A stretch of DNA of 64,000 nucleotides from Haliotis rufescens (Eukaryota): assembly GCF_023055435.1 (NCBI RefSeq), contig NW_025963868.1, positions 11,656,001 to 11,720,000 of the forward strand, in the 5' to 3' direction. Positions 8,150-54,406 of the stretch are shown here, one piece after another; the first letter of the stretch is position 1, and every line of letters starts with the position of its first letter. The notes under the pieces were generated by a model. That model was given only the letters and a program-made list of their open reading frames with translations, had not been told where the DNA came from and ran no database searches. A program made the translations under genes and the position numbers.

Positions 8150-11100
8150 ATGGGATTTCTCACATACCTGACTACTCTGTTGTGGATAGGACGGATTGTT
8201 GACACACGTAGGTTTCCCTTTGTCATTATACAAAGTATTGAATTATCTATGTACATATATATATTGTGCAATGGTGTATAAAGTGTAAATAGCAATCACA
8301 GTATTTAAAAGTACTCCCTCACCACGTTTCTTTGTGTACGCTGATGGAATTCCAACATGACTGGTGTTGAAGAAAGACAAAGTACGAAAATCTCTACCTG
8401 TTTGCCTGATTTATTCTAATGTATGTTGGAATGTTGCAGGTGGTTTCCCTCTAGAACTCACTCAGTTCCAGTCAGGCGATGATGTCACCTTAGTCTGCAC
8501 CGCAACTAACACCACTATCAAGATTGAGTTTACACAATGGTACATGGATGACGTACGAGTTCTCATGTCAGTGTCTGCAGGGAATGTATGTCTAAAACAC
8601 CCACCTACCAGCACAGGCGATACTTATGCATATCGTTACGACCTATACATATCAACGGATGTCAGTGTAAGCTGTGGTTACCTCCAACACAACATGACAC
8701 TAACTACAACTCAATACCTCCATGCTGGGACTGTGTGGCGGTGTGAGGATCAACGCAAGAGAGTCAGTAACAACCTTACTTCAGGTATGATCTATCTGTT
8801 TCATTTCGTGCGCATATATTCTTTTATTTACATTTACATGTCCTTGTAATCTCACGCATCATGTTGTGACACACTGTACATGTATCAATGCAGATATACC
8901 TCAGTCGGTATGCATGATCAATAACTATATTTACAACACGGACACCCAAAGATACATTAATACTTTTAGAAGTGATGTGAAATGGGATTTAACGTCCCTT
9001 GCATGTTTATTGNNNNNNNNNNNNNNNNNNNNNNNNNNNNNNNNNNNNNNNNNNNNNNNNNNNNNNNNNNNNNNNNNNNNNNNNNNNNNNNNNNNNNNNN
9101 NNNNNNNNNNNNNNNNNNNNNNNNNNNNNNNNNNNNNNNNNNNNNNNNNNNNNNNNNTTGCAAATATACTAGCCCAGACTAATGCAGGTTTCATAGTGCT
9201 AGCCCACAAAGATATCATGCACTACTTTAACATGATTACCCCACTCAGACACATTACGCTCGGAAGCGACAAGTCCTTGTTGTATTCCCTTGACTCAGTG
9301 CACCGGGCAGGGCAACAACAAGTACCATCTTTTCACATTTTTTAGAATTACACGGCCGGAGATCGAACATCCAACCATTAGACCACATTGTTATTGTGTG
9401 TTAGATATTGAGCCAGTAAATGTCATAATTAACTTATATTATTTGTGTCTGCAGACATTCTAGGGACTGCGTATGAGTCAACTCCACCACTGACTGCATC
9501 AGCAACAACGATCGCCACAGACAGAGCTATTCATGGTAGTTGTGCACCAACTAACTAAACTAACGTTTGCATACAGTGTATATCATATTTAGAGAGACTT
9601 TGTATTAACACCAGTTATCATATTTAAACTTATGCCGACATAAGTCATGTACTTGTATACTTATTAAGCTAAAGGTTTGGCAGTACAATGTATATTAGTT
9701 TTAGGAAAAGTCTGGAACATATATAATACAACTATGATTACCCATAGGGTTAGAAAAGACCGAGTTCATGAAAAATGCATGTGTACTAGTGCAAAAGACA
9801 TTGTTTCCGTCCTTCTGATGGCATTGTTGAAGTCATTTAATCCTTTTGATGCTGAAGGTCGGAATAGCGTCACACTGGAAAAGACGCCATAGATGAAGTT
9901 TGTTCAGGCCACTCGACATTTGTGGTTTTCTGAAACTGCGATCCTGCTCAGTGCAGTTTTCTAAACGGGAGATCAAAAGAATTAGGAAGTAATACATCAG
10001 TATGACAACTTTTACAGACACATGATCTAGGACATAATATCAATATGCATTGAGCCTCGTTTATTTGAGTGAGTGAGTGAGTGACTATTGTTTTACGTCG
10101 CTTTTAGCAATGTTGCAGCAATATCACGGTTGGGGACACCAGAAATGGGTTTCACACATTTTATCCAAGTGAGAAATCGAACCCTGTTCTTTGGCGTGAC
10201 GAGCGACCGCTTTAACCACTAAGCTACCCCACCGGCCCAGCATTTATTCAAAGAAACATCATGGTGATATATTTTAGTATGTTATGGCTCTTGATATTGC
10301 AGAATTTATAACAGGTCAACCCTGCTGTATGGAAGTATGTAATATTACACTATACAAGACCTACACAAATATATCACTGCTAAATAATAAATCATGGAAC
10401 AGACACCCATTACTAACGAGTAAGGTGTAAAGCCCATTAGTTTCGCTGCTTATCAATGTGTTTGTTAATATTATATTATTCAATACTTATACTAACAACC
10501 TCTATGCACAGTACAACTCATACATTTGCCAGAGACGGTATATCAGCCCAGTATTTGTTTTCTTATTTTTCTTTTTCAAGTTGTTAATAACGCCATAATC
10601 ATCATTGTTATGGCGGGAGGTGGCGTCGTGATCCTCATCATAAGTGTTCTCTGTGTATGTTTTTTGAGGAGGAGGCGAAAAGAAATTGGAAAAGCTACAC
10701 AAGGTGAACTCATTCTAAAATTGACTCAATATGATTTTTTTATATTTATTTATAGTTACTTCGATTGGCAGTTCCTATTGTTGTCCTTTGCTCGATAATA
10801 ATTTTCTCATGTTTTAATTATAGTGCGTGAGTGAGTTGGGTACAATGCAGCTTTGCACAGTATTCCAGTTGTATTAATGCGAGGCGGTATTCGTAGGTTT
10901 TTTTGCGTCCCATGAGAAGCAACATTGTACAACGAATTGCGGCGCCCTAGATGACAGGACCGCACGTCGAGTTTTACCAAAAAGAAATACCTTTTGTTTC
11001 CAATTCATAAGCCGATATTGCATACAGCCGGAGCTGACTGTAACGCCATTTATACGATCAGTGCTGATTGGATGTGAATTTATTGTTTTATAATCGAGCA

Positions 11101-11503
11101 ACAACGTAGTATTTTGTTCCGCTGCTAACAGTAGTTTCTATTGAGTATATCTAACATATATCTCAATACAAACGAAAAAAAACCGATTGATGTCTTGTGG
11201 CCTTGTATCACAGATCAAATGTATTGATGCAGCTTGCACCCGTGTGTGTAATGTAAAATATGCCTTATGTCACCAATGCTTGATTCTTAAGTTCTAAATT
11301 GTATTTGTGTTTGTGCAGATGTATCACTGGCTGATGTTGACACACCTCAGTACGACACTTTGGCTCACAATGGCAATACAGATCCCTGTTACTCAGAGAT
11401 CAAGAAAGAAACTTCCAGACAGTCCAACATACACACAAACGATGTTTACTACAACACCGTATCCAAAAATGCTGACTACGAAAACCCACCCATGAGAACA
11501 TAG
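8150..11503 (+). CDS. Gene A: single-Ig-domain type I receptor with ITAM-like tail (~263 aa)
   Basis: Exons 8150-8207 (leader MGFLTYLTTLLWIGRIVDT), 8440-8784 (Ig: TLVC..WYMD..VWRC), 9455-9535 (stalk), 10581-10703 (TM), 11319-11503 (tail ...PQYDTLAHNGNTDPCYSEI...VYYNTV..DYENP..*). All introns are GT-AG and phase 1; the total of 792 nt is an open frame. The N gap 9013-9157 lies in intron 2. Confidence 0.85.
9013..9157. other. Assembly gap (N run); second gap at 27173-27328
   Basis: N characters in the sequence. Confidence 1.
10066..10238 (-). mobile_element. tRNA-derived SINE family 1 (gene A intron)
   Basis: Full-length copy: (gagt)n ... gggacaccagaaatggg ... aatcgaaccc ... ctaccccaccg. Confidence 0.85.
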
Positions 11504-16346: not shown

Positions 16347-19300
16347 ATGGACATCGGGATTCGCCTGATTACTCTGCTGTGCATAGGATGGATTGCGTAC
16401 ACACATAACAGTAGGTTTGAATATTAAATAATGCGAAAGGTTGAACCATTTGGATTTCATTGATGTAATTTAATAGTGATTGTAGCAGTTTATATCCGTT
16501 ATATTTCGTATTTGCATGTTACAGCTGGGTCGGCATTGTAAGTACACGAAGAACGACAAAGAATGTCACTGCATGTTTGTGTTCTGATTGCTTCTCATGC
16601 TGGTTGTATGTTGGAATGTTGCAGGTGGTTTCCCTCTGGAACTCACTCAGTTCAAGTCAGGCGATGATGTCACTTTAGTCTGCACCGATGCTAACACAAC
16701 TTTCAACATAGAGTTTACAAAATGGTACATGGATGACGTACGAGTTCTCACGTCAGTGTTTGCAGGGAATGTCTGTCAAAAACACCCACCCAACAGCCCA
16801 GGCGATACTCATGCATATCGTTACGACCTATACACTTCAACGGATGTCAGTGTAAGCTGTGGTAACACCCAACACAACATGACACTAACGACAACTCACT
16901 ACCTCCACGATGGGACTGTGTGGCGGTGTGAGGATCAACGCAATAGAGTCAGTAACAACCTTACTTCAGGTATGATCTTTTTTTGGCCATGAGCTCACAT
17001 TCCTTTACTTACATCTACGTGTTCTTTTGATCTCACACATCGTGTCAGATAGACGCTCCAACCATCTGACCACAGAGGCGATAAAATAAAATTTATTCTT
17101 CTAGAGCGTCGATATTGAGCTGGTAAATGCCACAATTAATTTATATTATTTATGTATGCAGATATTCAAGGTACTCTAGGTAGTTTTGTATATTACATTT
17201 AGAGAAACAATGAGACCTGTTATGCCATTCACATTAATGCTGGTAAAATCATCTTAACAATCGTAGGTCAGATACAATATCAGATAGTTTTAATAATCCT
17301 CTGTATATTATAGTTTGTACTTTTATATGTAAAATGTTCGAACGTCGTTTCACAATCACACTGAGCATAACTGATGTTGGCTCATCTAAAAGATTTTTCA
17401 AACAATAGTATTGTGTAATTCTATGTCCTCTATGATGGGCTAGCAAATTTCATAATTATTTGTTTTTATTATTTGTGTCGGCAGGCTTTGCAGTGACTAC
17501 CAATAACACAAGATCACAACTGACTGATTCAGCAACAACGTTGGCAAAACTTACAACTATCAAGATAACTACTCCCCTGAGCAACGAAAATCAAGGTAGT
17601 TATGTATTAGTCGTCAAAATTACCTTTGGCTACGATGTGTACGATATTTAGAAACAGTCAGGAATGTATAACACAACCGTATACGGACCCATGATCCAAG
17701 ACATACCCCCTTTTTGCATTGAACGGCATGTATTTGAACAGACGGTATTGTGATAAATTTCGGTGTATCAAAGCTCTTGATATTGCGGTTTTACACGATA
17801 TTTCATGGCTGCAGTTTACTCGAATAGGATACTGTCTTAGCTTAGTTACTGTGAATGAATGAACGATTATGAACAACAAAGTAAAATATAATGTTCTCAC
17901 CTCCAGACAAATAGCATGGAAAAAAACATTGATCATAAACCCATTACTGACGACGTGCTGTTTCACGCCTTCGAGTACTCGGGACAAATTGGATTCACTT
18001 GATTCTAGTGTTATTCGGCCATCATCACAATCAACGGATACGGACATACAGACAACTCCAGAATCTAGTAGTTACATGTAATCTCCGTCTCTGCATACCA
18101 TGCTTAAAACCTAGGTTTTGTACAGTATTGAAACAGAACAGGTAGCTCTAATCTGTAATATACATACATAAAAAATCACAGTCCCTTTTCGAAAAGAAAA
18201 CTTCCCAAATCAACCTAAGTCATTTGTGGTGAAACATTATCAAGTTAAAAACTTCAGGTCATAAATCCTTAACAACCCCAGCATATAGATTGATGTCATC
18301 AAATCCATCTGCGTGTATACAGCATGGTCTCTCCTCTCGCTATTATTGTCTCAGATCATTCAATACTTACACTCATTGCTTATGTACACGGACTCATACC
18401 TGAACCTACATAGACTTATACATGGACCAATTTAACGGCCAGTATATAAGCCCAGTATTTGTTTTCTCCTCAAGATAACACCATATGCATTATATTTTTT
18501 AAAGATCAACATCAACTTCATTGACATCACTAACCATGGCCCAGACACCCAGTATATGTTTTATGTTCAAGATGACACCATGTACATTGCTGCTGGGGCA
18601 GGAGGTGGCATCATGATCCTCATCATAATCGTTATCTGTGTATGTGTTGTTAGAAGGAGAAGAACGGTAAACGTCACGCAAGGTAAACTGCACTTCTGCA
18701 GTCGGAACATATTACTATTATTTGGTATCAGATTCCGATTTGATGTAAAGTGATTTGAAGATCAAACCAGAACATTCAGGACAACGTTAAGCATTTCAGA
18801 TGTAAATATTAAAGTTTCATCAAATATAAAAGCTACAGCTCTCATCTGTCAATTCATTTACTTATCCATCCTTATCATAAAATCGCTTATTTGAGCATAC
18901 ATCAACACATATCGCAAGAGTATTAACAACAGAAATATAATAAATTATGCAGTGAACAATGGTATTGGTCGTCATGTCTGTTCACAGCTATCAGCGATGC
19001 AGACAATGGTGCAGAGCTTTCAGAAAACCCAACTTATGTTAGGTGAGTAGAGTGTCAAGTGCTTCCACTGTATGTCACCTTTGAATTCCGTCACGCAACG
19101 CCCGTATGGGTCGTCTTCAGTATAGAGTTATGTTATTTCAATGTGGTCAACTGTATGTCTTTTCTAGCCTTTGCATTGGATTGTGACGGATACGATCTAA
19201 ACCTTGTGTCATTTTTATTGAGTAAGATTCATAAACACATGCTTTAGATATAGTCAGAACGGAAAATGGACTCTGCTTTCGGCACAGATTTCTTACAATT

Positions 19301-21198
19301 ATGGAAATGGTTTTGTTAGTTTTATTTGCATCTCACAAAACGTACTGTTTACAATGTTAATACTCTTTATATTCAGGAACCATTCACTGTGTAATACAAA
19401 CACCTAACCATGTAATATTGGTTTAACGATTTCCTTTATCATAGGAAAACTTTAATCACAAACGATTTAGTCCAGAAAAGTTTGCGTTATATTCACAATG
19501 AAACACGAAACATTATGGAATACTAGACATGTACTAAACTTTAGTTTGTTGTGAGCTTTCCTGAAGGTTATATTGGCCTACACAATATTGTGTGTGATTC
19601 TGTTCTCTCCAAGCTGTGACAGTGAAACAGCGCCTCAGCTTATGTGTGAACGAGTATCTCTGATTGGAGCTTTTACACAAGTCAATGGGATCAATAGTAT
19701 CATCTCAAATGTGATAAACAAACATTATTCATGAAACTTTTGTATGCCACTTTGCTATGATCACATTTACGTGTAGGTTTCTATGTAGTTATGGTTATTA
19801 TTATTTGCAATAATTTATTCCAGTGTTGAAACGATCAATAATTTAAAACAAAAATCCTTTTCAGAAATCAAGATGAAGCAGCTGACAACAAAGAGCTCTT
19901 AACTAGTAAGTCTTCACAGTTGTGGTGTTCTTCACTTCCTCACATATCTGACTACTGTATTTGAGTGGTGATTATAGTTAGAGTGTTGCCTTCTCGATGA
20001 AGCTGAATAATTTCGGGAAGAATTTAGGGTGATTATTATGTTGTTAGTTGTTGGAATATAAACACCATCATTCCATTTCTAACTGCCGCACCAGGCACGA
20101 CAACCGTACACCAGCCTGCTGTAGTTGGTGCTGTCAACGTTGACGATGTGTATCCTGTACCAGACAAAACACCCAAGCACCAGTCGGCTGTACGTAGTGC
20201 TGTCAACGTTGTCGATCTGTATGCTGTACCAGACAAAACACCCAAGCACCAGTCGGCTGTACGTAGTGCTGTCAACGTTGTCGATCTGTATGCTGTACCA
20301 GACAAAACACCCAAGCACCAGTCGGCTGCACGTGGTGTTGTCAACGATGGTGACATGTATGCCGTCCCGGACAAGAGACCCACACACCAGCCAGCTGTTG
20401 GCGGTGCTGTCAACGTTGATGATCTGTATGCCGTACCGGATATGTCAATGAAAACAAAGAACGGAACATGTAAGTATACACGGAAGTGTGACCGGACTAG
20501 GAGTTATAATGAGTCTCCTTATATGTTTGTCGTAAGAGGCTCTGAAAGGGTTGGATGATTTGGCTCGGTTGATTATTCGACTAACGGCATCGGGTGCTCA
20601 GAATCGGTGGCATGGTTCATGCATTGCATCGTATCCCAATTTCGTAGATCGATGCTTATGATGTCAGTCACTGGGTTGACTGGTCCAACTGGTCCCGGTG
20701 ATTTACAGACATCCGTCACAAAGGTGGAACATTACTGGATGCGCGGTTAATCAACAAACAAACAAAAAAAACTTGGTAGTTAATGTGTCATCGTAGCCGA
20801 ACGACGTGGAACGTTTTTCATAACATTAACCGTTGGTTTGCCTGGTCCAGACTCGACTTTTAAAGGACGATTACTGACTGTGGCGCAAAACAACGTACAT
20901 ACAAAATGTCACATCCTTTTAGGGATTTATGACTGACTGACTGAGTGAGTATGGTTCTAAACCGCTTTTAGCAATATTCCATCAATATCACGGCGGGGGA
21001 CACCATAAATGGGCTTCACACATTGTACCCATGTCGGAAATCGAACCTGGGTCTTCGGCGTGACGAGCGAACGCTTTAACCACTGGGATACCGCCCCCTA
21101 GGGATTTATGACAGCAAGACAATGTTGATGTTTGGACTGAATATATATTGTTGGTTGTTGCAGATAATTCTCGGTCCGAAGCCGACAGTGAAATCTAA
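16347..21198 (+). CDS. Gene B: single-Ig-domain type I receptor with NPxY and 5x YxVP-repeat tail (~384 aa)
   Basis: Exons 16347-16410 (leader MDIGIRLITLLCIGWIAYTHN), 16625-16969 (Ig), 17162-17179 and 17485-17595 (stalk), 18572-18682 (TM), 18988-19042 (ENPTYV), 19865-19905, 20095-20469 (69-bp repeats), 21164-21198 (YNSRSEADSEI*). Splice phases are compatible; 1155 nt open frame. Confidence 0.82.
20095..20445 (+). repeat. Coding 69-bp (23-aa) tandem repeat, 5 units (paralogues 38525-38805 with 4 units and 53588-53800 with 3 units)
   Basis: Unit KTPKHQSAVGGAVNVxDLYAVPD. Exon lengths of 375/306/237 nt differ by exact multiples of 69. Confidence 0.92.
20934..21098 (-). mobile_element. SINE family 1 with 14-bp TSD (last intron of gene B)
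   Basis: TSD tagggatttatgac at 20920-20933 and 21099-21112; empty site in paralogues D (~39290) and E (~54285). Confidence 0.9.
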
Positions 21199-23050: not shown

Positions 23051-25030
23051 AAGTCGTTTCGGTAAAATACACGATTTTTACAAATAATGTCATTTTTTCC
23101 ACTTTTTCTCACCGAATACATTGAGTTGTCCTCCGACATATTTAATTCTTAATTTATATTGATTTTGTCAAGTTATCAAAATGGTGAAAACTTTTTAAGT
23201 TGTATACCTTCTTTTGGACACTAGTTCATATCACATATTTGACGAATATTTGTGTTTTTATTTTTTGCACATTGTCCAAACTTTAATATTGTTAAAGCTT
23301 TTTGCAAGGACATGTTATTGTTAGTCTTGGTTGTCATGTTTTTGACATTTATACTTATTTCAGTGCAAAAAATATATATTTTGGATGTTCTCACTCCGGT
23401 CGTATCGCATAGGTCTGATTTTATAACGCCATTGTATATATTTGGCTACATTATGTGTCAGTGTTTTCAGTCGTATCACAAATGTCTAACTAGCGGAAAA
23501 TAGCGATCAGTTAAAATATTTATGAAAACCGAATATGAATATACCAGGAAAGTCGTTACAGAATATTTCAACAAATTTCAATGGGGCAGCTGATTCATTT
23601 ATGGCAGGGAAATACTACAACAGGGATTTGATAGAGTTTCAATGCGGTTTTCCTCCACCGCGTATCTCGGGCAACTCAAATCAATATTATCTTATTCGTG
23701 TATTGTGTAACATTCTGTCGCTTATCAGCAAGTTATATATTTTGAATTAAAAGATTCGTCGCACAAAGTACCTCACCAAAGGCTGATTGTCACTACAACA
23801 GGAACATTCAAATCATGCGAATAGAATATATGTCAGACATAACGGGGTTGAATATAACAAAATGTTGCTTATTATAAAATATATTTGAACTCCATTGGAT
23901 CATGTTAATAACGAACTGATTGTAGTCTCGTATATACATGTACTTAGGTACAAAACAGCATACTCGGAATTCTTTTTGTCGTTTTTACATAAGTATTCTT
24001 GCTGATGATGTTTATGCAAAGTTATAAATGTACTTTATTACTGCATGGTCCCCTGTATCATGTTTACAATGATTTATGTGTGCAGAAATAACACTTATTT
24101 GATTTTCACAATGTATTGTCCTATTGTTCAATCATTTACATTTCCACTCACAGGTTAGTCGCACAGTCGGTTTCATGTTGTCCTACATGTTGGTCAAGTT
24201 TAAGTGTTTTATTTTGACATGTGGATTTTACTTCCTTATCTGCTTTCGGCATGAAAAAAATATGCCTCGCCTGACGAACTGTGTTCTTTTCTCTCTGAAA
24301 CCTAATAATCAATACTTGTGATTATACATACGTGATTTGCCAAACCATCTAAATACGAACGAATTACACATCATAAATATATCAATAAAAGATAGCATTT
24401 GTACGATGAGAACATTAGCTCGAGGAAATATGACTGTACGCTCGGCCTGCAGCAACCCGACAGTACAAACGTTGAATGTTTTGTCTGTTGCATTACACAA
24501 GTCAGAGGGTGGGAAAAGGAAAAGGAAACAGTGCTTGATACCATACTCAAAGTCCCAAGTCACCGGGAACAACACACAACCAGCCAGGTTACGGTCCATC
24601 CGATCTCCTTTTTAATTAGTTTTTATTTATTTTGTGTTTGTTTGTGTGTTGTTTAACGCCGCACTTTATTCCAGCTGTATGATGGCGGTCTGTAAATAAT
24701 TGAGTCTGGACATGACAATCCAGTGATTGACATCATGAGCATCGATTTACGCAATTGGGATACGATGACATACGTTGGAATGACACAGCAAACGTGCAGG
24801 CTCGCTCGCCTGTTTTTTTCCCGCTCGCCTCGGTTCCACAACTTTCATGTCTTCTGGTTTCATTTCTAAACAGCATTTTTCCAAAAGTGTTGAATGTTTG
24901 AATTTGGCGGTAACTGACCATGTCATTTCAAACAGCCGCCTTTTCTCGAACATATTTGTTCCAGTTAGTTACAGTCTGACTGTTGCAGTTCTTGTCGCCT
25001 CTTGCCTTGATTGACAGGTCCGTATTGCAG

Positions 25031-25218
25031 GTGGTCTCCTCCTATCACTCACTCAGTTCCAGTCAGGCGTACATGTCACCTTAGTCTGCAGCACTACTGA
25101 CACCACTATCTACATGGAGTTTACACAAAGGTATATGGATGACGTACGAGTTCTCAACATCACAGGCGATAGTTATGCAAATAGTTACGACCTTTTCACT
25201 TCAACGGATATCAGTGTA
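25031..25218 (+). pseudogene. Truncated Ig-exon remnant of the same receptor family
   Basis: After ttgcag it reads GLLLSLTQFQSGVHVTLVCSTTDTTIYMEFTQRYMDDVRVLNITGDSYANSYDLFTSTDISV then TGA TGA. The core Trp is replaced by Arg, there is an internal deletion, and the F-strand Cys, donor site and leader exon are missing. Confidence 0.85.
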
Positions 25219-25613: not shown

Positions 25614-26271
25614 TGATATAACGTGGACAGGGTTCGAGCCACTGACCTCGGGTTCTCGGGGCAGACGCTCTATCCACGTCCCCACAGAGGCATTTTTTTC
25701 CTGAAAAATAGAAGTTCACGCCCTGACGTTACAACTGGTTATGCAGCGAGCTTATGATTGCCTTCTTAGCATAAATGTCGACAGGTCACCATGAGGAAGG
25801 CTGGTTTGTCACTCCTCGTTGTGTCAAGATCGGATCACGAAACCTGAACGTCATTTCAAGTTCAACCCAAATTGTTTATTTAACCCGGCGATGAGAACTT
25901 ATTTCATCTCGGATATTGTTTATGATATTTAGCTTTATCTGAACAAGAACAAATGCACATTTGCGAGTCAGTGTTGGCGAACACCAACCCTTCAGAACGT
26001 ACGTGTCGAATTTGTCCTTGTTACCCACTTATACAAATATAACAGGTATGTATTCGTGCATACCTAAACCAGGAAAAACAGCTGAATGCTGATTGTAGGA
26101 ATATTTCCTCCTTTATAAGGATATATTTCATATTTGGTGGAGCGCTCGTGTTTGCTGGTGGAGAATGCTGCATGTTGCTCTGTGTGTATGTCATGTGTAG
26201 GGACTTCAGTCGGGTTATTTCAACCAAACCTTCAAGAATGTTGACGAGAGGATGCTTGCTTTAGGAAAAAC

Positions 26272-33190: not shown

Positions 33191-34182
33191 ATGGACACAA
33201 GGATTCGCCTGATTACTCTGCTGTGTATAGGATGGTTTACGTACACAAATAACAGTAGGTTTGAATTTCTAATCATGCTGTGTATAGGATGGTTTTCGTA
33301 CACAAATAACAGTAGGTTTGAATTTCTAATCACCCGAAGGATGGAAGCATCAGGATGTCGTAGGTGTAATTTAATAGTGATTGTACCACTTTATATCCTA
33401 TCTGTTTCGTGTTTGCATGTTACAGTTATTTGGGTATTGTAAGTACATAAAGAACGACAAAGAATGCCATTGCATGTTTGTGTTCTGATTGCTTCTCATG
33501 CTGGTTGTATCTTGGAATGTTGTAGGTGGTCTCCCTCTAGAACTCACTCAGTTCCAGTCAGGAGGTAATATCACCTTAGTCTGCAGTTCCATCAACACCA
33601 CTATCAACACGTCCTTCAGATATTGGTATATGGATGAGGTGCGAGTTCTCACGTCAGTGTTTGTAGGTCATGATCATGGTTGTAACAGAAACTCACCCAA
33701 TAATGATACTGCATATCGTTACGACCTATTCACATCAAATGATGGTAGTGTAAGCTGTGGTGACAACCAGCACAACATGACACTAACTACAACTCAATAC
33801 ATCCAAGCTGAGACTGTGTGGCGGTGTGAGGATCAACGCAATAGAGTCAGTAACAACCTTACGTTGGGTATGATCTTTTTGTTATGCGCTCATACTCCTT
33901 TGTTTACATCAACGTGTCCTTTCTGATCCCATACATCATGCTATGACACATTGTGCAAGAACGGATGCAGATGTAACTGATTCATGAAATATATACCTGG
34001 GAACCATACGTAAATGTTCAAGGACTATGAACACGCCATCTACAAATTAAGAACTCTATAAATCGGTCACCCAAAGATACATACGGTATTAGCACTATCG
34101 GAGAGTAAGGTGAAATTGTTACGTCGCGTCCATCATTACTCCACTTATATAGCGACGTCCATGTACGTTTGTGTGAGTGTGT

Positions 34183-34233
<51 letters not shown>

Positions 34234-41300: not shown

Positions 41301-44300
41301 AGTGAGTGAGAGAGTTAGTGAGTTGGGTTTAACGCCGCTTTTAACATTATTTCAGTTATATCGCGGCGTGTCAGCTTAATATGTAGGAGGAAAGCCCGAT
41401 GTGATGCAGGTCTTTGACGTTTACCACTTCGGTGAAACCCACAAGCACGGGTATGGTGCTGACAAACCTAGAAACAAAATCGGGGCGAACCGGGATTCGA
41501 ACGTGTCTCAAAGCTTCATCCCAATATCTCTGAGCATTCAAGATACTGCTGGTATAGTTCGTTTTGGATATTATGACATGTTCAATACATATCTGTGCGT
41601 TATTTTTAACATTGTTCAAACTTTAGTATTGTGAAAGCGTTCTTCTGGGACGTTTTTCTGTTATTTTATTGGTCTTATTGGTTGTCATTTGTTTTTACAT
41701 TTATACTTATTAAATGCAACACATGTTTATTTTGTATATTTCCACTCACGTCGTATCGCATGGGCCTGTTTGAATAACGACATTGCACATATCTATTTAC
41801 GGTAAGTGTCGTGGTTTTCAATCGTATCACGAATGTCAAACTTAGGGAAAATAGCGATCAGTAGAAATATTTCTCAAACCCGAATATGAATATACCAGGA
41901 AAATAGCGATAGAATATTTCAACAAATGTTAATGAAGCAGTTGATTCACGTATGGCAGGAAAATACTACAGCAGGAATATGAAAGTGTTTCAATGCGGTT
42001 TTCCTCCACTGCGTATCTCGGGGAACACAGACCCAACATTATGGTATTCATGTATTGTGTAACAATGTATCGCTTATCAGCAACATAGTTTGCAGTTAAG
42101 GCTTCCTCGCACAAAGTGCCTCAACAAAGGATGATTGTCACTGCTGCATGAACATTAAGTTCAAGCGAATATATACCAGATATAACCGGGTTGAATATCA
42201 CAAAATGTCGATAATATTGAAATGACTCCATTGGATAATGCTCCTATCGATCTAATTGTTGACTCGTGTATACTAGGTACTTAGGTTATACACGTAGCAT
42301 ACTGGGATTTTTGTGTAGTTTATATATCCTGATTCCAGCTGATGATGCAAACAGTTATAAATGTACTTAATTTCTGCATGGCCCCCTGTATCATGTTTAC
42401 AATGATTTATGTGTGCAGAAATTACACTTATTTTATTTTCACAATGTATTGTCCTTGTGTTAAATCATTTACATTTTCAATTATTTTTGTCGTTTTTACA
42501 TTAGGATTCTTGCTGATGATGATGATGCAAAGTTATGAATGTACTTTATTTCTGCATTGCCCCCTGTATCATGTTTGCAATGATTTCCGCATGCAGAAAT
42601 TACACTTATTTTATTTTCAATGTACAATGTATTTTCCTATTGCTCAATTTACATTTGCACACATACTGTATTTGCACAGTCGTTGTTATGTTGTCCTGCC
42701 TATTGATCAAGTTTAAGTGTTGGCTTTCCGCATCGAATAAAATATGCCTTAACTGAACATCTGTATTCTTTTCACTCGCAAACCTAATATTTAATACTCT
42801 TAAAAACAGTCTAAACTTCACATGCGTAACTTCCATATTTCCACCTACATTGAACTGAAATGCCACAAAGTAACTGAATTCCCAAACTAGTTCATCGTGC
42901 TAAGAAACCAAGGTGCCTAATCCGTCTTAGCAGACACAGTAGATCCTGGTAACATTTATGTTAATTTATAAGGCGTTCTCACACTCCGGCACCAGTGGTG
43001 ACTCCACTGCCACAGGCTAATTAGCATATCACGTGACAGGAATTTTTCTCTTGTCTGAAAACAAACGCGCTTTTTCAGAAATCAGTATAAAACGGACTAA
43101 TGCAAGTATTTGAGGGTGCTTTACAAATTGTTTTGCACAATTATATAGATATGCTACTACAACTGCGACAGTGAGTTGTATGACAATATATATTTATACA
43201 TCAAAGTGACCGAATCGCTAGCTCTCCGTTGGACTTCAATGTCAGCACGTTGAGCCGTAGAACCAATGTAAACAAAGGACAACTACGCCAAAACAAGTAG
43301 ATTTTCACGTTTTAGGATACTTTCATAATGAACCGTAACCATTCTTTGACATTTGTTGATGAAAATGTGTAGACTTGTCAAACATGAAACGGACGAAAAG
43401 CATATGCAATATTTTGAATGGACTGTGTAAGATGTGACGAATCGTCACATGGCGCTGGCCTGTGGCAGAGGTACTATGCTGGCATGCTACCGCCCGCTTG
43501 GAACTCTGGGTAGGAGAGTGAAGCGTTCTATTCATCACAACTATTTAAGATATATGATTTGCCCAACCGTCTAAACACTTACGAACTTTACATTATGTAC
43601 ACAGAAGCTAGGGTGAATATAACTGATTAACGCTCGGCAGCAACCAAACAGTACAAGCGCTGAATGTTTTTATCTATTGCCTTACACCAGTCAGTGGGTG
43701 GGAGAGAATCGGGTTGTCAGGCTCGGTGGATTGGTTGTTTGTGTGTTGCACACTGATAGTGTGTGTTATCGTAATCACTTGATTATCTGGCTCAGCCGCG
43801 ATTATTTACAGGCCATCTTCATACAGCCATTGTATGTAGCTGAGGGAGGTGTTCAGCGACAAACAAATCAACATGTCAGTATTACTCAGTGTTACCCACT
43901 ATTCATCAATATTGTTCAGTGATGTTCGGTATAATTCAGTATTGCTCTGAGACTGTAGAAGTAGAATTTTTTATTTGTATGTAAACTTCTTGCCTGTAAT
44001 ACAAAAGAATGCATGACATATTTCAAACGTGCTTTTGCAACAAATACAAAAAAAACAAATAAATGCAGATATGTATTTTAAGGGGTTGCTTGAAACAAAA
44101 ATGTCATCTACATGACGCTATTATTCTCTCTGGGGGCACGGGTGGCCCAGTCGTCGAAGGCGCCAATCGCTGTGCAGAGTTGCGTCCCTTAGGCACGCCA
44201 GAAACCTATGATTGTGGGTTCGAACCCCGGTTCGCCCCGATTATGTTTCTAGGTTTGTCAGCACCATACCCGCGCTTGTGGGTTTCACCGAAGTGATAAA

Positions 44301-47105
44301 CGTCTGAGACCTGCACCTCTTCGGGCTTTCCCCCCACATTAAGCTGACACGCCGTGATGTAACTAGAATACTTTTAAAAACGGCGTTAAACCCAACTATC
44401 CCACTCACTATTATTTTCGCAAGCCAGTAAATGCTTCAAGAGAATAATGTCATCCACATCAGAAAGGTTACAGAACTGACATTCTTGTAATCTCATTCTG
44501 CTTTCCATTTTCGACCATCTGCTTGCACTACTCTGCAGTCATAACGCGAGTGGGTGAATCAGAATAGTTTAACGCCGCGTTTAGCAATATTCAAGCAATA
44601 AAACAGCGGGGAAAATCAGAATGAGATAAGCTTTATTGTCACGACGGCAGTATTTCAGCCATATTGTGACTGGAAAATGTAATATAAATTTTTTATTAAT
44701 AATAATATAGTAAACCCTCTTAGCGATAGACAGTACAATAGCTAGCAATGTATCATATATTTACATGAAAAGCCAATTTGGGAACATTTAAAAGAGGATT
44801 CTCTTGACAACAGGAGATAAAAATGGTCTCTAGGTCGCCAGCAACCAAAGTTAGGCTAGTATTAAAGGAAACGAGTTTTGATAAAAAAAAGCAGCTTCTT
44901 TATTCAAACTTTTTTTAGTTGTAAAAGGCTTATGAGAGAGGGTAGACTCAAGGAACTGACAGCGTCATAAAGCCTCACATGTGAGCATTACCACATCTCA
45001 CGCAGGGGTGGTACATTGTTTCTTCCATTGAACACAGATGAAGTGCTTCAGAAATATAGAAGCTCCAAGCAATAACCTTTGCTGACGAGGTCCCTTTCGA
45101 AACTAAATAGTCAACATGAACTGCAAACACGAAAATGTCGCTTTTTCCGTATATGCTCATTAGACGGAAAAACGACGGTTTTTTTTGGACGCTTTCACGA
45201 CGCCCGTGAGTGAGTGAGTGAGTATGGTTTTACGCCGCTTTTAGCAATATTCCAGCAATATCACGGCAGGGGGCACCAGAAATGGGCTTCACACATTGTA
45301 CCCATGCCGGGAATCGAACGCGGGTCTTCGGCGTGACCCTAAAATGAGACCATGTCAGCATGGATCGATGGATATGTGGTATTCTTCAGATCGCAGTGAC
45401 AAATTAATACATAATACATAACATAACGGCCATGAGTGATGTCATCCGGCTTACTGCTGACCACTCACACTTAGTGTGACACTCCAAAAATCGTTTCAGC
45501 AAATATCTGTGGATTATCAAAGCGATGATGAAAATGCAAACCTGATGTGACAAAACAAATAAAATTATTAAAAATCCTTAAAAAAAAATTCTTAACCATA
45601 GCGGAATTCGACAGAAAAACGAGAAAATGTGAATGAATTGCAATCAAGTGGACCTTCAAAATCTGACCTTTAGGTCATCACCGTGAAGAAGCCTATCACG
45701 GACCTGGAATTCGATCTCACACACACGTTTGATACCAGTTGTAAGAAATGTTACTCACTCTCGTGTTATTGTACCTTTGCTAATACAGCGCTGACTACAG
45801 TGTAGACCGCCACCCCTACCTCCGTCCCCGCTACCTCTCAGAGGAGCATTCATTCATTATAACGATCGTACCAATGTGTATCGATCGATATTTATATTAT
45901 TCTTCCTAAAGGTTTGTAAAAAAGAATATTCATTGTCCAAAAAACTCTTTAGAACCGAAGGCTGAGAAGGAATGAAACAGCAAACGTGCAGGCTCGCTCG
46001 CCTGTTTTTTTTCCGGTTCGCCTCGGTTCCACAACTTTCATGTCTTCTGGTTTCATTTCTAATTAATCAGCATTTTTCCAAAAGTATCTTCCCTTCTCAG
46101 GGAAATAATGTTTGAATCTGGCGGTAACTGACCATGTCATTTGAAACAGCCGCCATCTCCCGAACATATTTGTTCCAGTTCGTTACAGTCTGAGTGTTGC
46201 ACTTCTTCTCGCCTCTTGCCTTGATTGACAGGTCCTAAGACTTTTGTTTTTATCATACTCTCAGTTGATTGGCTACTGACTTTGTAGGCGTGTCAAATTA
46301 TGTGCGTAATTAAACAGTCAGCAGATTCATGTCACGCCACAGTATGTATTCCTACACCCGGAATGTTTATCAATCTCGTCATTTTTGCCCGCTTTGATAT
46401 ATACAACTGTTTTTGGTTAAACTATTGTAGATAAAACATGTTTTTGTTATTGAATTTAATTACAAGCATTGACTGTGTATTTTTTCGGTTCATTGAGGTT
46501 TGAATCGAAAAGCCGATGTGCAAACTTTTGTAAGAATCTGCTAAGTTATATTTGGCTAGGGCAGTTTTAATAGGTTGTGATAACGAACCTATTGTAGCCT
46601 GCCTCGCACACATATCATACATCGGCAGGTTACCCGGGGCTGCTTTGTGAAAACTGCCACTGTGTCACGATCCGACAGTCAAACTTAAATTAACAAGTAT
46701 CAATACCACCAAAAAGACTCAACGCGCGACTATCTGAACATATTTTTTTTCTGTGAAAGTATATTTCAAGTTATTATTTCTTTGCAAACCAAATGTATTT
46801 TAAATGGCAAATGTACTGTCTCCGGTCAGTTGAATTCAATAGCGACTCGTCCCATTTTATCCACACTAACGGGTATGTATTCATCATTATCTAAATAGAG
46901 CAACGAAAACCTTTTCATATTCATAAAAAATCTTGATTCCGACTCTATCTCAACCAGGAAATAACAGTTCCATTAGAGTGGTTGTTGACTGCACAGCCAC
47001 ACTTTATGCGGCTCGGTGTAGGGCATGGTGTGAAGTGACTAATTTTACAGTATTTAAGAAACGTTCAAGGGGCATTCACGAGAGTGTATTCGATGTGTTG
47101 GCAGC

Positions 47106-47163
47106 ATGGGCTTTCTCGTATACCTGACTACTCTGTTGTTGATAGGACGGATTACGGACACAC
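47106..47163 (+). other. Orphan intact A-type signal-peptide exon upstream of gene E
   Basis: ATG GGC TTT CTC GTA TAC CTG... = MGFLVYLTTLLLIGRITDT with a phase-1 donor c|gtaggt, homologous to 8150-8207. Flanks ~46540-47520 match ~7540-8390, then switch to C/E-type upstream sequence. Confidence 0.75.
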
Positions 47164-47897: not shown

Positions 47898-50800
47898 ATG
47901 GACACCAGGATTCATCTGATTACTCTGCTGTGGTTTGGCTGGTTTGCGTACACAAATAACAGTAGGTTTGAGTTTCTAATCAAAAGCGAAAGGTATAACA
48001 ATTAGGATGACGTAGGTGTAATTTAATAGTGATTGTAGCACTTTATATCCGATCTGTTTCGTGTTTGCATGTTACAGTTATTTGGGTATTGTAAGTACAT
48101 GAAGAACGAAAAAGAATGCCACTGCATGTTTGTTTTCTGATTGCTTCTCATGCTGGTTGTATCTTGGAATGTTACAGGTGGTCTTCTTCTACAACTCACT
48201 CAGTTCCAGTCAGGCGATAATGTCACCTTAGTCTGCAGTGCCATCAACACTACTATCAACATGTCCTTCACACATTGGTATTTAGATGAGCAGCGAGTTC
48301 TCACGTCAGTGTTTGCAGGTCATTGTTGTTTCAGATACTCACCCAATGGTACAACCAATAATCTTGCATATCGTTACGACCTATTCCCATCAAATGATGG
48401 CAGTGTAAGCTGTAGTGACTACCAGCACAACATGACACTAACCACAACTCAATACACTCAAGCTGGGACTGTGTGGCGGTGTGAGGATCAACGCTTAAGA
48501 GTCAGTAACAACCTTACGTTGGGTATGATCTTTTTGTCATGCGCTCATACTCCTTTGTTTACATCTACGTGTCCTTTCTGATTTCATACATCATACTATG
48601 ACACATTGTGCAAGAACGAATGCAGATGTAACTGATTAATGAAATATATACCCGGGAGCCATACGTAAATGTTCAAGAACTATGAACACGATATCTACAG
48701 ATGAGGCACTTTATAAAACGGTCACCCAGAGATACATCGGGTGTAAACACTATCGGAAGTGAGTTGAAATGTTTTTCGTCGCGTCCATGATTACTCGCCT
48801 TATATAGCTACGTACATGCACGTGTCTGTGTGTGTATGTGTGTAGTGAGTGAGTGTGTGTTTGTGTGTGGTTGCTTGTATTATTCCGTATACAATTCCCG
48901 TTTCATAGTGTTTGCCCACTCAGATACCGTGGCGCAGTTTAACATGCATGCCCCATTCAGACACAGTACACTACCTCCGAACAGACAACATCGCGTTTTT
49001 TCCCCTTGATACCGGACAGGGAAAACTACGACTTTCCGTATGACCTGGCCTGGTGTCAAACCCACCGATCTTACCCTCTTAGGACAAACGTTCTAACCGG
49101 TTGACCATGGAGGCGGTCAATATAAAATCGCTTGTTCATGTGTATCGATATTAAGCTAGTAAATGTCACAACTAATATATATTATTTATGTATGCAGCCA
49201 TTCCAGGGACTACTGATAAGTCAACTACACCACTGACTGATTCGGCAACAACGATCACCACAGACAGCGATACTCATGGTAGATTTGTATCAGGTAAACT
49301 GACGATGTATTATATATTTAGAGAAATATTGTATTGATACCAGTGATGTCATTTACACTAATGCCGGCGAAAGCCGTTTTATCTGTTTTAATAATCCTCT
49401 GTATTTTATTAACCTACTATATGTATCAGCTATCCACACATTTAGTAACTTTGTATGTAAAATGTTCGAACGTGCGTTCCTAAAAACACTAAACATCAAT
49501 TGAACATGATGTGGCTCGTCTATCGGATTATTCAAACTATAGAAGCGTGTTATTTTATGTCCTCTGTGGTGAGTAAGCAAATTTCATAATTATTTGTATG
49601 TATTATTTATGTCGTCAGGGACTACTTATAAGACAAGTTCACAGCTGACAACGTTGGCAAATCTTACAACTATCAAGATAACTTCTGCCCCGAGCAACGA
49701 TAATCAAGGTAGTTGTGTACTAGTCGTCATACTAACCTTTGTGTACGATATATAGGATATTTAGAAACATTCATGAATATATAACAAAACCATATACTTA
49801 CCCAGGATCCAAGACATACCAACAATGTGCACTGAATGTGATACAGACAGTACTGTGATAGCTCTCTAGACACTGCGGTTTTCACATGATATTCTGATAG
49901 ATCAACCCCATTATTTCGGTGCGGCATTTTATGAAAATTCGTATATTGACTTATCTTTGTCATTGTAAATGAATGAACGTATATGAATAACAGAGTAAGC
50001 AATATTGTCGTCATGGAAAGTGGCATGGAAAAAACGTGGACCATAAACCCATTACTAACGACGTGCTTATTAACGTCAACGGGTAACCGAAGAAAATTTG
50101 GATCCACTGAATTCTAATGTTAGTTGGCAATGATGGCAATTACGGGTTACTGATATACAGAAACTTAGGAATGTAGTACACATATATAATCTCAATCTCT
50201 GCTTAGTATGCCTAGTTTTGTACAGCTCTGCATAAAAGGTGACTCGTATCTATCAGGTTACACGTTACATAGCTTCATGTTCGTTATTCAGGGCCTGATA
50301 CGTGGTACCAGTTGAAAACCCTAGCCAAATAACTAAATTTTATGGTGAAACGTTATCAAGTAAATACTAGTAACTTCGTGTGATTGCTCCTCATAGACTG
50401 ACGTCACCAACTCCATCTGCGTGTATACAGCATGGACTCTCTTCATGTAAAAGTTATCTTGTCTTAGATTATTCAGTACTTATACTCATTGCTTATATAT
50501 ACGAACTCATAAATGTACTTATATAGACTTATCCATGTGCCAAGTTCAAGGACAGTATACTTACTAGCCCAATATTTGTTTTCTCTTCCAGATGACACCA
50601 TGTACATCGCTGCTGGGACAGGAGGAGGAATCTTCATCCTCATTATAATCGTTATCTGTGTGTGTGTTGTAAGGACGAGAAGAAAGGGAAACGTCACGCA
50701 AGGTAAACTACACCTCTTTGATGACGGTCAGAACATATTACTATTATTTGGTATCAGATTCTAATTTGATGTTAAAGGGGAAGTGTACACGCAAAAATCA

Positions 50801-53800
50801 CTTTCTTTCTTTTTCTAAACAAAACGCAATTTTAGAATTAGTTAATATCTGTGATTGAAAATGTAAACTCATTTTTTTCACAGTGAAAGTAGGAAGCTCA
50901 CAATAGTGTGAAAATGATATGCCGTTATGAGGCCTTCGTTTTTCGAGCTAATCAGGCCTGAGTTATCCCCCTTAGATTATGACGTAATTGGTGCCAATTC
51001 AACTGGATCCCTGTCTATTCTCAACGCAAAAGATATCAAGTACCAGTTTTCGGTAAAACAACATGGCCTACGACACACTCCGGCGCAGTGGTGACTCAGT
51101 ATAACACTATGCTGGCTGGCATCTGAGACGCTAGAATCACACAGCTGTACCTACACCACGTGAAGCGGCTCTAACATAGCATGATGACGTCATAATGTTT
51201 ATCAATTGGCACCAATGACGTCATATTGCAAGGGGCATAAGCCATGGTGTTTTTGTTATGAAAATAGAACACTTGGTAAATGTGAAAAATATAAATCGTT
51301 TTAATGCAAAACATATGTTAATTAATTGTGATATTTTTATATTTTTGTCTATGACACTACTAGGTTAACACTTTTAATGTGGAAAAAGTACAAGAAAAAT
51401 AGGTTCATTTCCGTGTGAACTTGCCCTTTAAGTGATTTGAAGATGAAAATGGAACATTGGTGAAAGTGTCATAAAGCATTTCAGATGTAAAGATTAAATG
51501 TCAGTTTCATGAAAAGTAATAACATACAGCTCTCATCTGTCAAATCATTTCCTTATCCCTCCTTGTAATAAAATAGCTTATTTGAATATACATCAACCCA
51601 TTTCACAAGAGTAATAATTAAAGAAATATCATAAATGAACAAAGGTGTTGGTCGTCATGTCTGTTCACAGCTATCAGCGATGCAGACAATGGTGCAGAGG
51701 TCTCAGAAAACCCACTTTATGTTACGTGAGTAGAGTGCCAAGTATTTCCACTGTATACCACCATTGAATTTCATCACTCAATCCCCGGGACCGCCTCCGT
51801 GGTCTAGTGGTAGAGCGTCGCTATATAAGTGCAATAATCTTGGACGCGACGTTAAACCCGATTTTACCTCACCTCACCTCACCTCACCTCACCTCACCTC
51901 ACCTCATCTCATCTCACCTCACCTCACCTCACCTCACCTCAATGCCCGTCATAGGTATATTGTTGTCATAGGTATCGGAAATCGTTCAATAACCACCAAA
52001 TAGACAGTTCCCTTCCACTGATTTACCCACCTGAACTAGAAAAAAAGAAGACAAATGAAACCACTTCGCCTGTTTCTTATGTAGAACTATGCACAAAGAT
52101 TCAGAGGGATAAAGCACTAGACTGCATGACAAGTGGAATGACTTCAACTTTCCAACAGTCAACTTTCCCTTTATGTCAAGCAGTATTCCAGTAGGTACAG
52201 CTATTGGTGTCTACATTTCACAACTTTTGAAGAACATTCGAGCATGCACTTTCAATCAAGATTTCAAAAAGAGCGTAATTTTAATACATTCCTTGCTAAA
52301 AAGCTATTTGATCAAGGTTACAACATTCGAGGAAACATTCCTGGCCTCAGAAAAGCTTTAATAAGGTTAACTGTAGACACGTGGGGAACATTGAAGCTTC
52401 AGTCCCTATTCATACTTGTACCACATGTTCCCGTGGGGTTTTTTCATGTGATTATTTGACTTGTGTTTGCATGTGACGGGTGCCGCTGATGGGGCGAACA
52501 CCTGGTATAACCACTATTTAATAGTGATTCATAAACGCATGCTCGTGATATAGTCCGAATCGAACAATCGACTGTGTTTTTCTCGGAGATATGGAAAGGG
52601 TTTTGTCGCATTTGTGCAGTACATAATACGTTAATTATGTGTTTTCATCATAAAACTCTCCATAGGGGTAGGTGACTTTGTCGCCTTCATTTAAATGTAT
52701 TCATTAATATAATCAACACACACAACAACGGTCGCATCATCAACCCTGATCACGGGTAATTCATCGTTCAAATATTTTCTTCATAATTGTTCTTTTATAA
52801 TGATGATGCAACTGATTTTTACAAAAACCCGCACATTTTTGTATCCGCATGTAGTTCTAAAATATTTTCATTTTTTTTATTGTAAAGCGTGGTCGTTGAT
52901 TGTATGTTGTTGGAGGACAAGGGACTACAAATAGACACATTCGATCTTGTTGTTGCGTAAAGGCGGCCATGCTTGTCGTAAGAGGCGAGTAACGGGATCG
53001 GGTCGTCAGGCTCGCTGACTTGGTTGATGCATGTCATCGATCCCAACTGATCGGATCGCTGCTCATGATATTAAACACTGGATTGTCTGGTCCATACTGG
53101 ATTATTTACAGACCGCCGTCTTACAGCTGGGATATTGCTGAGTGTGGCGTTAAACAACACACCAACCAACCAATGATACTGCGGGTAACGCCCATCACCT
53201 TTAGGGATACGATGATCAATGTCTACAGATCAATGGTATCGCCTCAAATGTGAAAAAAATTTATTATTTATGAAAATGTTGAAACTTATTCCTGCAAATT
53301 GTTCCCAGTGTTGAAACGAGCAACAACTTAAAAACAATATGATATTTCTTTTCAGATACCAAGTTGAACCTGTTGACAACAAAGTGCACTTCACTTGTAA
53401 GTCTTTTCTATTGTGGTTTTCTTCACTTCATCACATATCTGACTATTGTATTCAAATTGTGATTATAGTTTGAGTGTTGCCTTCTAAATTAAGCTTAATA
53501 ATTTCAGGAAGAATATCTAGGGAGAATAATATGTTGTTACTTGTTGAAATATGAACACCATAATTCTATATTCAACTGCCGTACCAGACAATACACCCGA
53601 ACACATACCTGCTCTTGGCGGCGCTGTCGACGTTGGTGATCTGTATGCCGTACCAGACAAGACACCCAAACACCAGTCAGTTGTAGGCGGTGCTGTCAAT
53701 GATGGTGACAACTACGCCGTCCCGGACAAGACACCCAAACACCAGTCAGCTGTAGGCGGTGCTGTGAACATTGGTGATCTGTATGCCGTACCGGACATGT

Positions 53801-54406
53801 CCATGAAAACAAAGAACGGAACGTGTAAGTATACACGGAAGTGCGATTGACCGGACAACGGGTTAGAATGCGTCTCCTTATCCATGTCTGTCGTAAGAGG
53901 CTCTAAATGGGTCGGGTGGTCTGGCTCGGTGACTTGGATGATTAGTCAACTAACGTCATCGGGTGGTTAGAATCGGCGACTTGGTCCATGCATGTCATTG
54001 GATCCGAATGTTTTAGATGCTCATGATATCAGTCACTGTGTTGTCTGGTCCATAATCGATGATTTACAGACCCCATCACAAAGCCGGAATATTCGCGGTT
54101 AAACAGCAAACAGCAAACAAACAAACTTGGTGCATAGTGTGTCATCTTTGCCCAACGATGTGGAACATTTACTATAACAGTAACCGTCGGTTTGTCTACT
54201 CCAGACTCGACTATTTAAAGGATGTCATCAGGAATATTTAACTGAGGCGTAAAACAACTTACCTACAAAATGTAACATCCCTTGCGGGATTTATGACAGA
54301 AAGACAACGTTGATGTTTGGATGGAATATGTGTGGATGACATAAACACATTGGTTGTTGCAGATAGTACTTGGTCCGAAGCCGACAATGAGTATAGTGAA
54401 GTCTAA
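47898..54406 (+). CDS. Gene E: single-Ig-domain type I receptor with NPxY, 3x YAVP repeat and NEYSEV tail (~355 aa)
   Basis: Exons 47898-47961, 48178-48522 (Ig), 49198-49278, 49619-49708, 50592-50702 (TM), 51671-51725 (ENPLYV), 53356-53396, 53588-53824 (repeats), 54363-54406 (YSTWSEADNEYSEV*). 1068 nt open frame. Confidence 0.85.
50776..51427. mobile_element. Non-autonomous DNA transposon (MITE) with TTAA TSD, Kolobok-like termini
   Basis: TTAA at 50772-50775 and 51428-51431; imperfect TIR AGGGGAAGTGTACACGCAAA / TTTCCGTGTGAACTTGCCCT; paralogues C and D have the empty site gatgttaagtgatttg. Confidence 0.85.

Follow-up and report, generated by a model that had tools for sequence, protein, structure and literature searches.

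A putative tandem receptor family of abalone in which matched V-type immunoglobulin ectodomains are joined to two unrelated tails

Among the recognized hallmarks of innate immune gene complexes in vertebrates are paired receptors whose ectodomains have been homogenized. In the CD300A/CD300C pair, gene conversion homogenizes the immunoglobulin (Ig) region and the tails remain different (PMC12447643), and gene conversion has likewise been described for KIR2DS4 (PMC2768862). Among invertebrates, receptors of the Ig superfamily (IgSF) carrying immunoreceptor tyrosine-based activation or inhibition motifs (ITAMs or ITIMs) are known from Hydractinia (PMC9546547), the tunicate Botryllus (PMC12065747) and the oyster (PMC11999971). 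The tails of the Hydractinia Alr proteins are very diverse, some with ITAMs (Yxx[IL]x6-9Yxx[LI]) or ITIMs (PMC9546547); the same paper cites Draper as a receptor that signals by way of an ITAM and Shark, and a Syk-type kinase is present in invertebrates (PMC9546547, PMC12065747). Our literature searches turned up no protostome family in which matched ectodomains sit on alternative tails, and no abalone paper on the receptors described here; the "ITAM" text matches in PMC12943528 are the author name Itami. Here, we analyze a window of 64,000 nucleotides from the red abalone Haliotis rufescens (G000:C90:11656001-11720000, on contig NW_025963868.1 of a 1.33-Gb assembly) that carries five receptor-like genes in tandem, denoted A to E. 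A preliminary description made from the letters of the DNA had suggested a molluscan host, in agreement with the identity of the window proteins to H. rufescens RefSeq entries, and had proposed a cluster of paired activating and inhibitory Ig receptors; the first part of that proposal, the pairing, is the main subject of this report.

Exchange of ectodomains between neighboring genes

Comparison of the window with itself revealed related plus-strand units arranged as a tandem array, and six-frame translation of the open reading frames located five Ig-like exons, all on the plus strand. Each of the genes A to E consists of a leader, a single V-type Ig domain, a serine/threonine-rich stalk, a transmembrane (TM) helix and one of two tails that are mutually unrelated in sequence, in the order tail 1, tail 2, tail 1, tail 2, tail 2 along the cluster. 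This common plan with two unrelated tails had been noted before, and the claim that all five genes are intact was confirmed by exon-by-exon models with checked phases, in which AG and GT flank each intron and all frames are closed. The Ig, stalk and TM exons of all five genes are in phase 1-1, so that either tail can be joined to a TM exon in frame. We consider it probable that these genes belong to a transcribed, abalone-only tandem family of small type I receptors, in which exchange of Ig exons or 5' regions between neighbors has put each Ig type on both tails, and that the two tails address two phosphotyrosine pathways.

To place the genes in context, 20 kb upstream and 40 kb downstream of the window were added, giving the order U1 (on the minus strand), U2, A, B, a relic Ig exon, C, D, E, a second relic Ig exon, F and G, where F has tail 1 and G has tail 2, the same pairing as in the window. 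Alignment of the Ig exons with MAFFT gave 18 differences in 114 residues between A and B and 7 in 113 between C and D, exactly the numbers counted by hand in the preliminary description, whereas A or B differs from C or D at 35-37 positions plus 5 gap columns, which bears out the far greater divergence claimed there. The Ig-exon tree comprises the groups (A,B), (C,D,E,F,G) and (U1,U2), and the approximately unbiased test on this tree rejected both a single clade of the tail-1 genes (p 2e-48) and a single clade of the tail-2 genes (p 4e-32).

The two pairs within the window differ in the extent of the shared sequence. Genes A and B are 89-95% alike solely over positions 8398-8834, that is, the Ig exon with about 45 nt on each side; their upstream regions are unrelated, and the leader and intron 1 of B are 77-90% like those of C, D and E. 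The restriction of the A/B likeness to this tract, together with flanks of B that resemble C, D and E, indicates that the tail-2 gene B received an A-type Ig exon. Genes C and D are 92-100% alike from about 250 bp before the leader to the TM exon and unrelated further upstream. Two relics frame this block in C, namely, a truncated Ig exon of the A/B type and a frameshifted TM exon (Table 1); the tail-1 region that follows the relic TM exon is 68% like that of A, and F also carries both relics, an A-type Ig exon and a TM exon. A relic Ig exon of the A type and a relic TM exon around the block in C point to insertion of a D-type leader-to-TM block into a tail-1 gene with an A/B-type ectodomain. 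By these sequences, C is a tail-1 gene in which a D-type block has taken the place of the ectodomain, and exchange between neighbors has run in both directions, with an A-type Ig exon moving into B and a D-type block into C and F. Although F is its block duplicate, C is nearer to D and G in the Ig exon, where a C+F clade is rejected (p 0.013); for the TM exon with its flanks, the C+F clade has support of 100/99. Gene E combines a proximal promoter of the C/F type (about 300 bp of upstream flank) with a tail-2 3' end.

It might be argued that the matched ectodomains are an unselected by-product of local conversion and unequal crossing-over in a young tandem family. Introns as well as exons are 90-99% alike among C, D, F and G, C and D are 99-100% identical over a 300-bp stretch (35154-35451) of the intron that separates stalk 2 from the TM exon, and the blocks psi-C-D and psi-F-G are colinear segmental duplicates with 89-99% identity, all of which would be expected of such incidental pairing. 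We nevertheless regard it as somewhat unlikely, given that exchange went both ways, that the A/B tract is limited to one exon and its margins, and that promoters and tails remain distinct. Moreover, U1 and U2 make up another matched pair with a common stretch of 668 bp (92.5% identity) spanning the Ig exon, and an E-like Ig domain, attached to tail 2 in H. rufescens, is combined with tail 1 in the Haliotis cracherodii protein P0018, as judged by shared alignment residues, a point that the tree does not decide.

Tails, signaling and selection

Tail 1 is 61 amino acids (aa) long and, in A, C and F, contains YDTL, a 9-residue spacer and YSEI, which fits the ITAM pattern Yxx[LI]x(6-9)Yxx[LI] (taken from PMC9546547), with an acidic residue at position -4 rather than -3. 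It also contains VYYNTV, the sole match to the ITIM consensus [ILVS]xYxx[ILV] among the tails in the window. The ITAM, VYYNTV and a YENP motif recur in relatives from H. cracherodii and H. rubra, that is, in three species including H. rufescens, and tail 1 is under purifying selection, with a ratio of nonsynonymous to synonymous substitution rates (dN/dS, omega) of 0.29 between A and C.

Tail 2 is built from four exons: an exon encoding NPxY, a 41-nt mini exon, an exon with an array of 69-nt (23-aa) repeats that yield three to five YxxP sites, mostly [LM]YAVP, and a short last exon that ends in NEYSE[IV] in D and E. In B, the terminal tyrosine has been lost through a 9-nt in-frame deletion (NEY) in the last exon relative to D and E. 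A motif scan found no canonical ITIM in tail 2 of the window genes B, D and E; the H. cracherodii tail-2 ortholog ends in SEYSEI, which does match the ITIM consensus. NPxY is a ligand of phosphotyrosine-binding (PTB) domains, the YxxP class is bound by Crk-type Src homology 2 (SH2) domains, and [ILV]YAxP is the site preferred by Abl and a ligand of Crk/Nck-type SH2 domains. By these motif specificities, tail 2 looks like a docking scaffold with PTB and Crk/Abl-type sites rather than a classical inhibitory tail.

Under the favored reading, a ligand would cluster the V domains, and a Src-type kinase would then phosphorylate the tails. Tail 1, with its ITAM, VxYxxV and YENP, would dock a tandem-SH2 kinase of the Syk/Shark type, and tail 2, with NPxY, three to five [LM]YAVP and the terminal YSE[IV], would dock PTB proteins and Crk/Nck/Abl-type adaptors, so that a single ligand specificity would feed two different phosphotyrosine pathways. 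The docking kinases and adaptors named here follow from the published specificities of the motif classes. A broader proposal, which we rate as less likely than not, is that a protostome independently evolved true matched-specificity pairs, with each V-domain specificity retained on both an ITAM and an NPxY/YxxP tail through two-way conversion, and that these receptors could serve as counterbalanced or dual-pathway hemocyte sensors under pathogen-driven diversification, with the tyrosine-less U1 and the motif-less U2 as decoys.

The preliminary description went further in one respect and assigned opposite signs to the tails. In its strict form, such a scheme would have tail 1 activate through its ITAM and tail 2 inhibit through SHP, SHIP, Csk or RasGAP-type regulators. 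Matched ectodomains on two tails, the retention of the tail-1 ITAM in three species and the SEYSEI end of the H. cracherodii tail 2 are all in its favor, and YxxP is generally known to be capable of binding RasGAP in Dok-type inhibitory adaptors. The motifs in the window, however, do not divide in this way: the ITIM-consensus match lies in tail 1 next to the ITAM, tail 2 has no canonical ITIM and ends in NEYSE[IV] with the tyrosine gone in B, the TM segment bears a charged residue in none of the five window genes, and NPxY with [LM]YAxP repeats is closer to docking and engulfment scaffolds than to inhibitory tails. The pairing itself, with matched ectodomains placed on two tails by exchange between neighbors, is supported, whereas the division into activating and inhibitory partners is not upheld on motifs, and we consider the strict scheme unlikely.

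In the Ig exon of C to G, nonsynonymous and synonymous changes number 48:10, compared with 18:14 in the stalk and TM exons (Fisher p 0.012). Several observations weigh against the reading of a matched-ectodomain family with two signaling tails, and this excess is one of them, being not significantly above neutral (ratio 1.37, p 0.23); the pattern in C to G is consistent with relaxed or diversifying selection and is proof of neither. The near-identical intron tract of C and D places conversion in introns as well, so homogenization is not confined to the Ig exon, and the presence of both the ITAM and the ITIM-consensus match within tail 1 makes the signaling sign of this tail ambiguous. U1 has a tail-2-like tail with at least ten 23-aa repeats (DLFAVPDKTPEH...) in which F replaces Y and with APTN in place of NPxY, and its H. 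cracherodii counterpart P0006 also has F for Y in the repeats and lacks NPxY; the tail-2 repeat may, to judge from these two proteins, have a tyrosine-independent role, and U1 could be a signaling-dead decoy. The join of the TM exon to tail 1 is taken from RefSeq models, P0001 for gene C and P0018 and P0025 from H. cracherodii. Finally, transcript contigs placed on D are only 93-97% like it, with differences that match different paralogs site by site in a mosaic; they originate from alleles or other copies, and what they prove is the exon structure of the family and not the expression of D itself.

Ectodomain fold, family distribution and transcripts

Searches were run with single exons, and the database proteins P0001, P0015 and P0026 served as full-length models. 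An AlphaFold2 model of the D Ig exon, based on a 21-sequence alignment, reached a predicted local distance difference test (pLDDT) of 84.7 and a predicted template modeling score (pTM) of 0.80. Foldseek returned 388 matches in the PDB at E<=1e-3, with V domains of antibody heavy chains (VH) and nanobodies on top (E about 1e-4), and the VIA exhaustive fold search gave Z up to 10.8, to VH, T cell receptor (TCR) V-beta and CD8-alpha. The B- and F-strand cysteines and the C-strand tryptophan are conserved in 90-100% of the 21 sequences, and so is a second cysteine pair. On the strength of the model, the fold matches and the conserved residues, the ectodomain is a divergent V-type Ig domain. Sequence profiles barely detect it: Pfam searches of the Ig exons gave only Ig_3 at E 0.04-0.09 (14-15 bits against a cut-off of 30), those of the tails and full-length RefSeq proteins gave zero matches above the cut-off, and the sub-threshold rows mCpol, KSHV_K1, gerPA and TMEM154 were set aside as noise. 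A profile search of the PDB gave only weak matches (E about 1e-3) to antibody and TCR V regions, and a feature search of the ESM Atlas gave only generic V-set receptor look-alikes at 0.90-0.92, near the chance range. The resemblance to TIM, CD300 and PILR suggested in the preliminary description did not emerge from these comparisons, in which the best folds are generic V domains, none of the three families is among the top fold matches listed, and the sequence relatives are from Haliotis.

Searched against 1.84 billion representatives, the D Ig exon matched 14 proteins at E<=1e-3, one of which, the weakly matching P0012 (875 aa), is probably spurious, consisting of unrelated repetitive sequence. 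All relatives looked up by name are uncharacterized proteins of H. rufescens, H. cracherodii, H. rubra and H. asinina. The family is, as far as these sequence searches reach, restricted to abalone, as the earlier claim of a lineage-specific family had it, and a characterized non-immune family, which would have overturned the original interpretation, was not found among the matches. On the same contig, thirteen more distant relatives of the Ig exon (31-43% identity) lie at 12.89-13.40, 19.76-19.93 and 22.05 Mb, and the tails of related RefSeq proteins are rich in tyrosine in yet other ways, as in P0013 with its repeated YMxL[KT]P.

The same architecture could serve a non-immune role, such as adhesion, gamete or larval-settlement recognition, or neuronal wiring. 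Abalone are well known for fast-evolving reproductive recognition proteins, and a Haliotis-restricted family with quick evolution in the Ig exon would suit such a role. By analogy only, ITAM, NPxY and YxxP tails on clustered small V receptors are typical of immune and engulfment receptors (PMC9546547, PMC11999971), and we regard a non-immune role as improbable.

Transcript contigs from four runs of two studies were placed on D (33100-39000) and contain GT..AG joints at 33254>33526, 33866>34560, 36579>38300 and 38339>38524. One contig connects the Ig exon, stalk 2 and the TM exon, with 81 unlisted nt in between that fit stalk 1, and another connects the NPxY exon with the repeat exon through a 40-nt stretch that fits the mini exon. 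Together with the RefSeq models, these contigs support the exon joins proposed in the gene models, a point on which the initial reading of the locus depended. The leader exon of D includes a 57-bp tandem duplication (33219-33332, 98% identical) that copies its 3' end and splice donor; of the two donors, the transcript contigs use the first, at 33254. An intron of D contains, at 36646-36900 and 37828-38221, a (TCACC)n array and a high-copy element, where all four runs show many loose ends and a contig depth of up to about 2e5; the element is probably an abundant SINE-like repeat (short interspersed nuclear element) transcribed from many loci.

Among the RefSeq models, XP_048254008.1 (P0001) is a full tail-1 protein that corresponds to gene C, its exon translations matching by eye, and two further models, P0026 for gene G (outside the window) and P0015 from H. 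cracherodii, represent tail-2 proteins in full, with nine exons each. XP_048254007.1 (P0002) truncates A to leader, Ig domain and stalk, D is divided into two models, P0020 and P0023, and no model for B or E was among those returned. With at least two genes truncated or split and the B and E models not returned, expression studies based on this annotation would under-count the family. Two RefSeq models, P0023 from H. rufescens and P0021 from H. cracherodii, skip the TM exon and pass from the stalk directly to the tail; with a length of 111 or 123 nt and phase 1-1, this exon can be left out without loss of the frame. These models may be real TM-less isoforms or annotation artefacts.

The stretch singled out in the preliminary description extends from the ATG of A (8150) to the stop codon of E (54406); the features of the window are collected in Table 1.

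Table 1. Genes, relic exons, tail features and assembly gaps of the receptor cluster, in window coordinates
Feature	Position	Strand	Details
U2 last exon	2737-3141	+	mucin stalk, TM, tail 3 without tyrosine motifs; matches RefSeq XP_048254006.1 (P0004)
Gene A	8150-11503	+	tail 1, 5 exons, 263 aa: 8150-8207, 8440-8784 (Ig), 9455-9535 (stalk), 10581-10703 (TM), 11319-11503 (tail 1)
Assembly gap (N run)	9013-9157		intron 2 of A; flanks colinear with D intron 2
Tail-1 exon	11319-11503 (A), 30859-31043 (C)	+	ITAM, VYYNTV, YENP; motif scan
Gene B	16347-21198	+	tail 2, 8 exons, 378 aa: 16347-16410, 16625-16969 (Ig), 17485-17595 (stalk), 18572-18682 (TM), 18988-19042 (NPxY), 19865-19905, 20095-20469 (repeats), 21164-21198
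69-nt (23-aa) repeat array	B 20109-20437 (4.8 copies), D 38514-38801 (4.2), E 53577-53797 (3.2)	+	TRF
Relic truncated Ig exon, A/B type	25025-25218	+	upstream of C; 87% identity to the A Ig exon vs 77-79% to C-G; tblastn
Gene C	26272-31043	+	tail 1, 6 exons, 293 aa: 26272-26335, 26548-26889 (Ig), 27626-27706, 28041-28139, 29173-29283 (TM), 30859-31043 (tail 1)
Assembly gap (N run)	27173-27328		intron 2 of C; flanks 26035-27172 and 27329-29405 colinear with D 32963-34149 and 34264-36334
Relic frameshifted TM exon	29500-29562	+	between the C TM exon and tail-1 exon; own branch with the matching F relic
Gene D	33191-39412	+	tail 2, 9 exons, 380 aa: 33191-33254, 33526-33867 (Ig), 34561-34641, 34976-35074, 36100-36210 (TM), 36525-36579 (NPxY), 38300-38340, 38525-38830 (repeats), 39369-39412
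Gene E	47898-54406	+	tail 2, 9 exons, 355 aa: 47898-47961, 48178-48522 (Ig), 49198-49278, 49619-49708, 50592-50702 (TM), 51671-51725 (NPxY), 53356-53396, 53588-53824 (repeats), 54363-54406

Both assembly gaps are positioned where D carries a (TG)n microsatellite (34170-34249); in the colinear comparison with D, no exon maps to either gap position, and the gap in C is spliced across in XP_048254008.1. The two gaps, and the similarity of psi-C-D to psi-F-G, might suggest that the paralogs are haplotypes wrongly placed in tandem. We consider such an assembly artefact very improbable: A and B, like C and D, differ in promoter, exon number and tail and so are not alleles of one gene, and between F/G and C/D there is a divergence of about 8% as well as an 8-kb insertion. 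The H. cracherodii RefSeq entries include several tail-1 and tail-2 proteins from one contig with consecutive accession numbers, a hint in the same direction and only that. The insertion, probably a transposon, lies at window coordinates 75390-83421 in the intron between stalk 2 and the TM exon of G and is absent from D.

Beyond the left end of the window, U1 occupies window coordinates -19863 to -10753 on the minus strand. U2 has its Ig exon before the window (G000:C90:11648045-11648410) and a long mucin stalk; its RefSeq name, "cell wall integrity and stress response component 4-like", was rejected as an indication of function, being driven by the S/T-rich stalk. Elsewhere in the window, an interspersed repeat of about 290 bp is present in five copies with 87-90% identity on both strands (5655-5943, 41312-41502, 44132-44408, 55637-55927 and 61497-61774).

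Comparison with known systems

At the level of motifs, tail 2 resembles Draper/CED-1, which combine NPxY and an ITAM, and the substrate domain of p130Cas with its repeated YxxP. No homology links these proteins to the abalone family, their ectodomains are unrelated, and the abalone U1 repeats have F for Y. The oyster receptor CgIgIT2 is likewise a membrane receptor of the IgSF from a mollusc; it carries its own cytoplasmic ITAM and has been linked to hemocyte immune signaling (as reviewed in PMC11999971); it differs in having five Ig domains, in being a single gene with no tail-swapped pair, and in being absent among the abalone sequence matches.

The Hydractinia Alr genes, like those of abalone, form a lineage-specific invertebrate cluster of IgSF type I proteins with divergent V-like domains that standard profiles miss. 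They belong, however, to a cnidarian histocompatibility complex and encode one to three Ig-like domains and an Fn3-like fold (PMC9546547); matched ectodomain pairs on alternative tails have not been described for Alr, and no sequence match to the abalone family was found.

In organization and evolutionary mechanism, the cluster matches the vertebrate paired Ig receptors, such as CD300A/CD300C, Siglec-5/14, KIR and PILR, in which, as in abalone, adjacent genes combine a near-identical V-type ectodomain with different signaling ends. No sequence relationship between these receptors and the abalone family was found, and the signaling ends differ in kind: charged TM residues and short adaptor-dependent tails are found in neither abalone partner, a canonical ITIM is missing from tail 2, and matches of both the ITAM and the ITIM type occur in tail 1. 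The abalone locus keeps a physical record of how such pairs would have formed, in the shape of relic exons around an inserted block and a conversion tract the size of an exon. With this record preserved, the idea of a convergent origin of the paired architecture can be put to a direct test in an animal that is farmed and suffers from serious infectious diseases.

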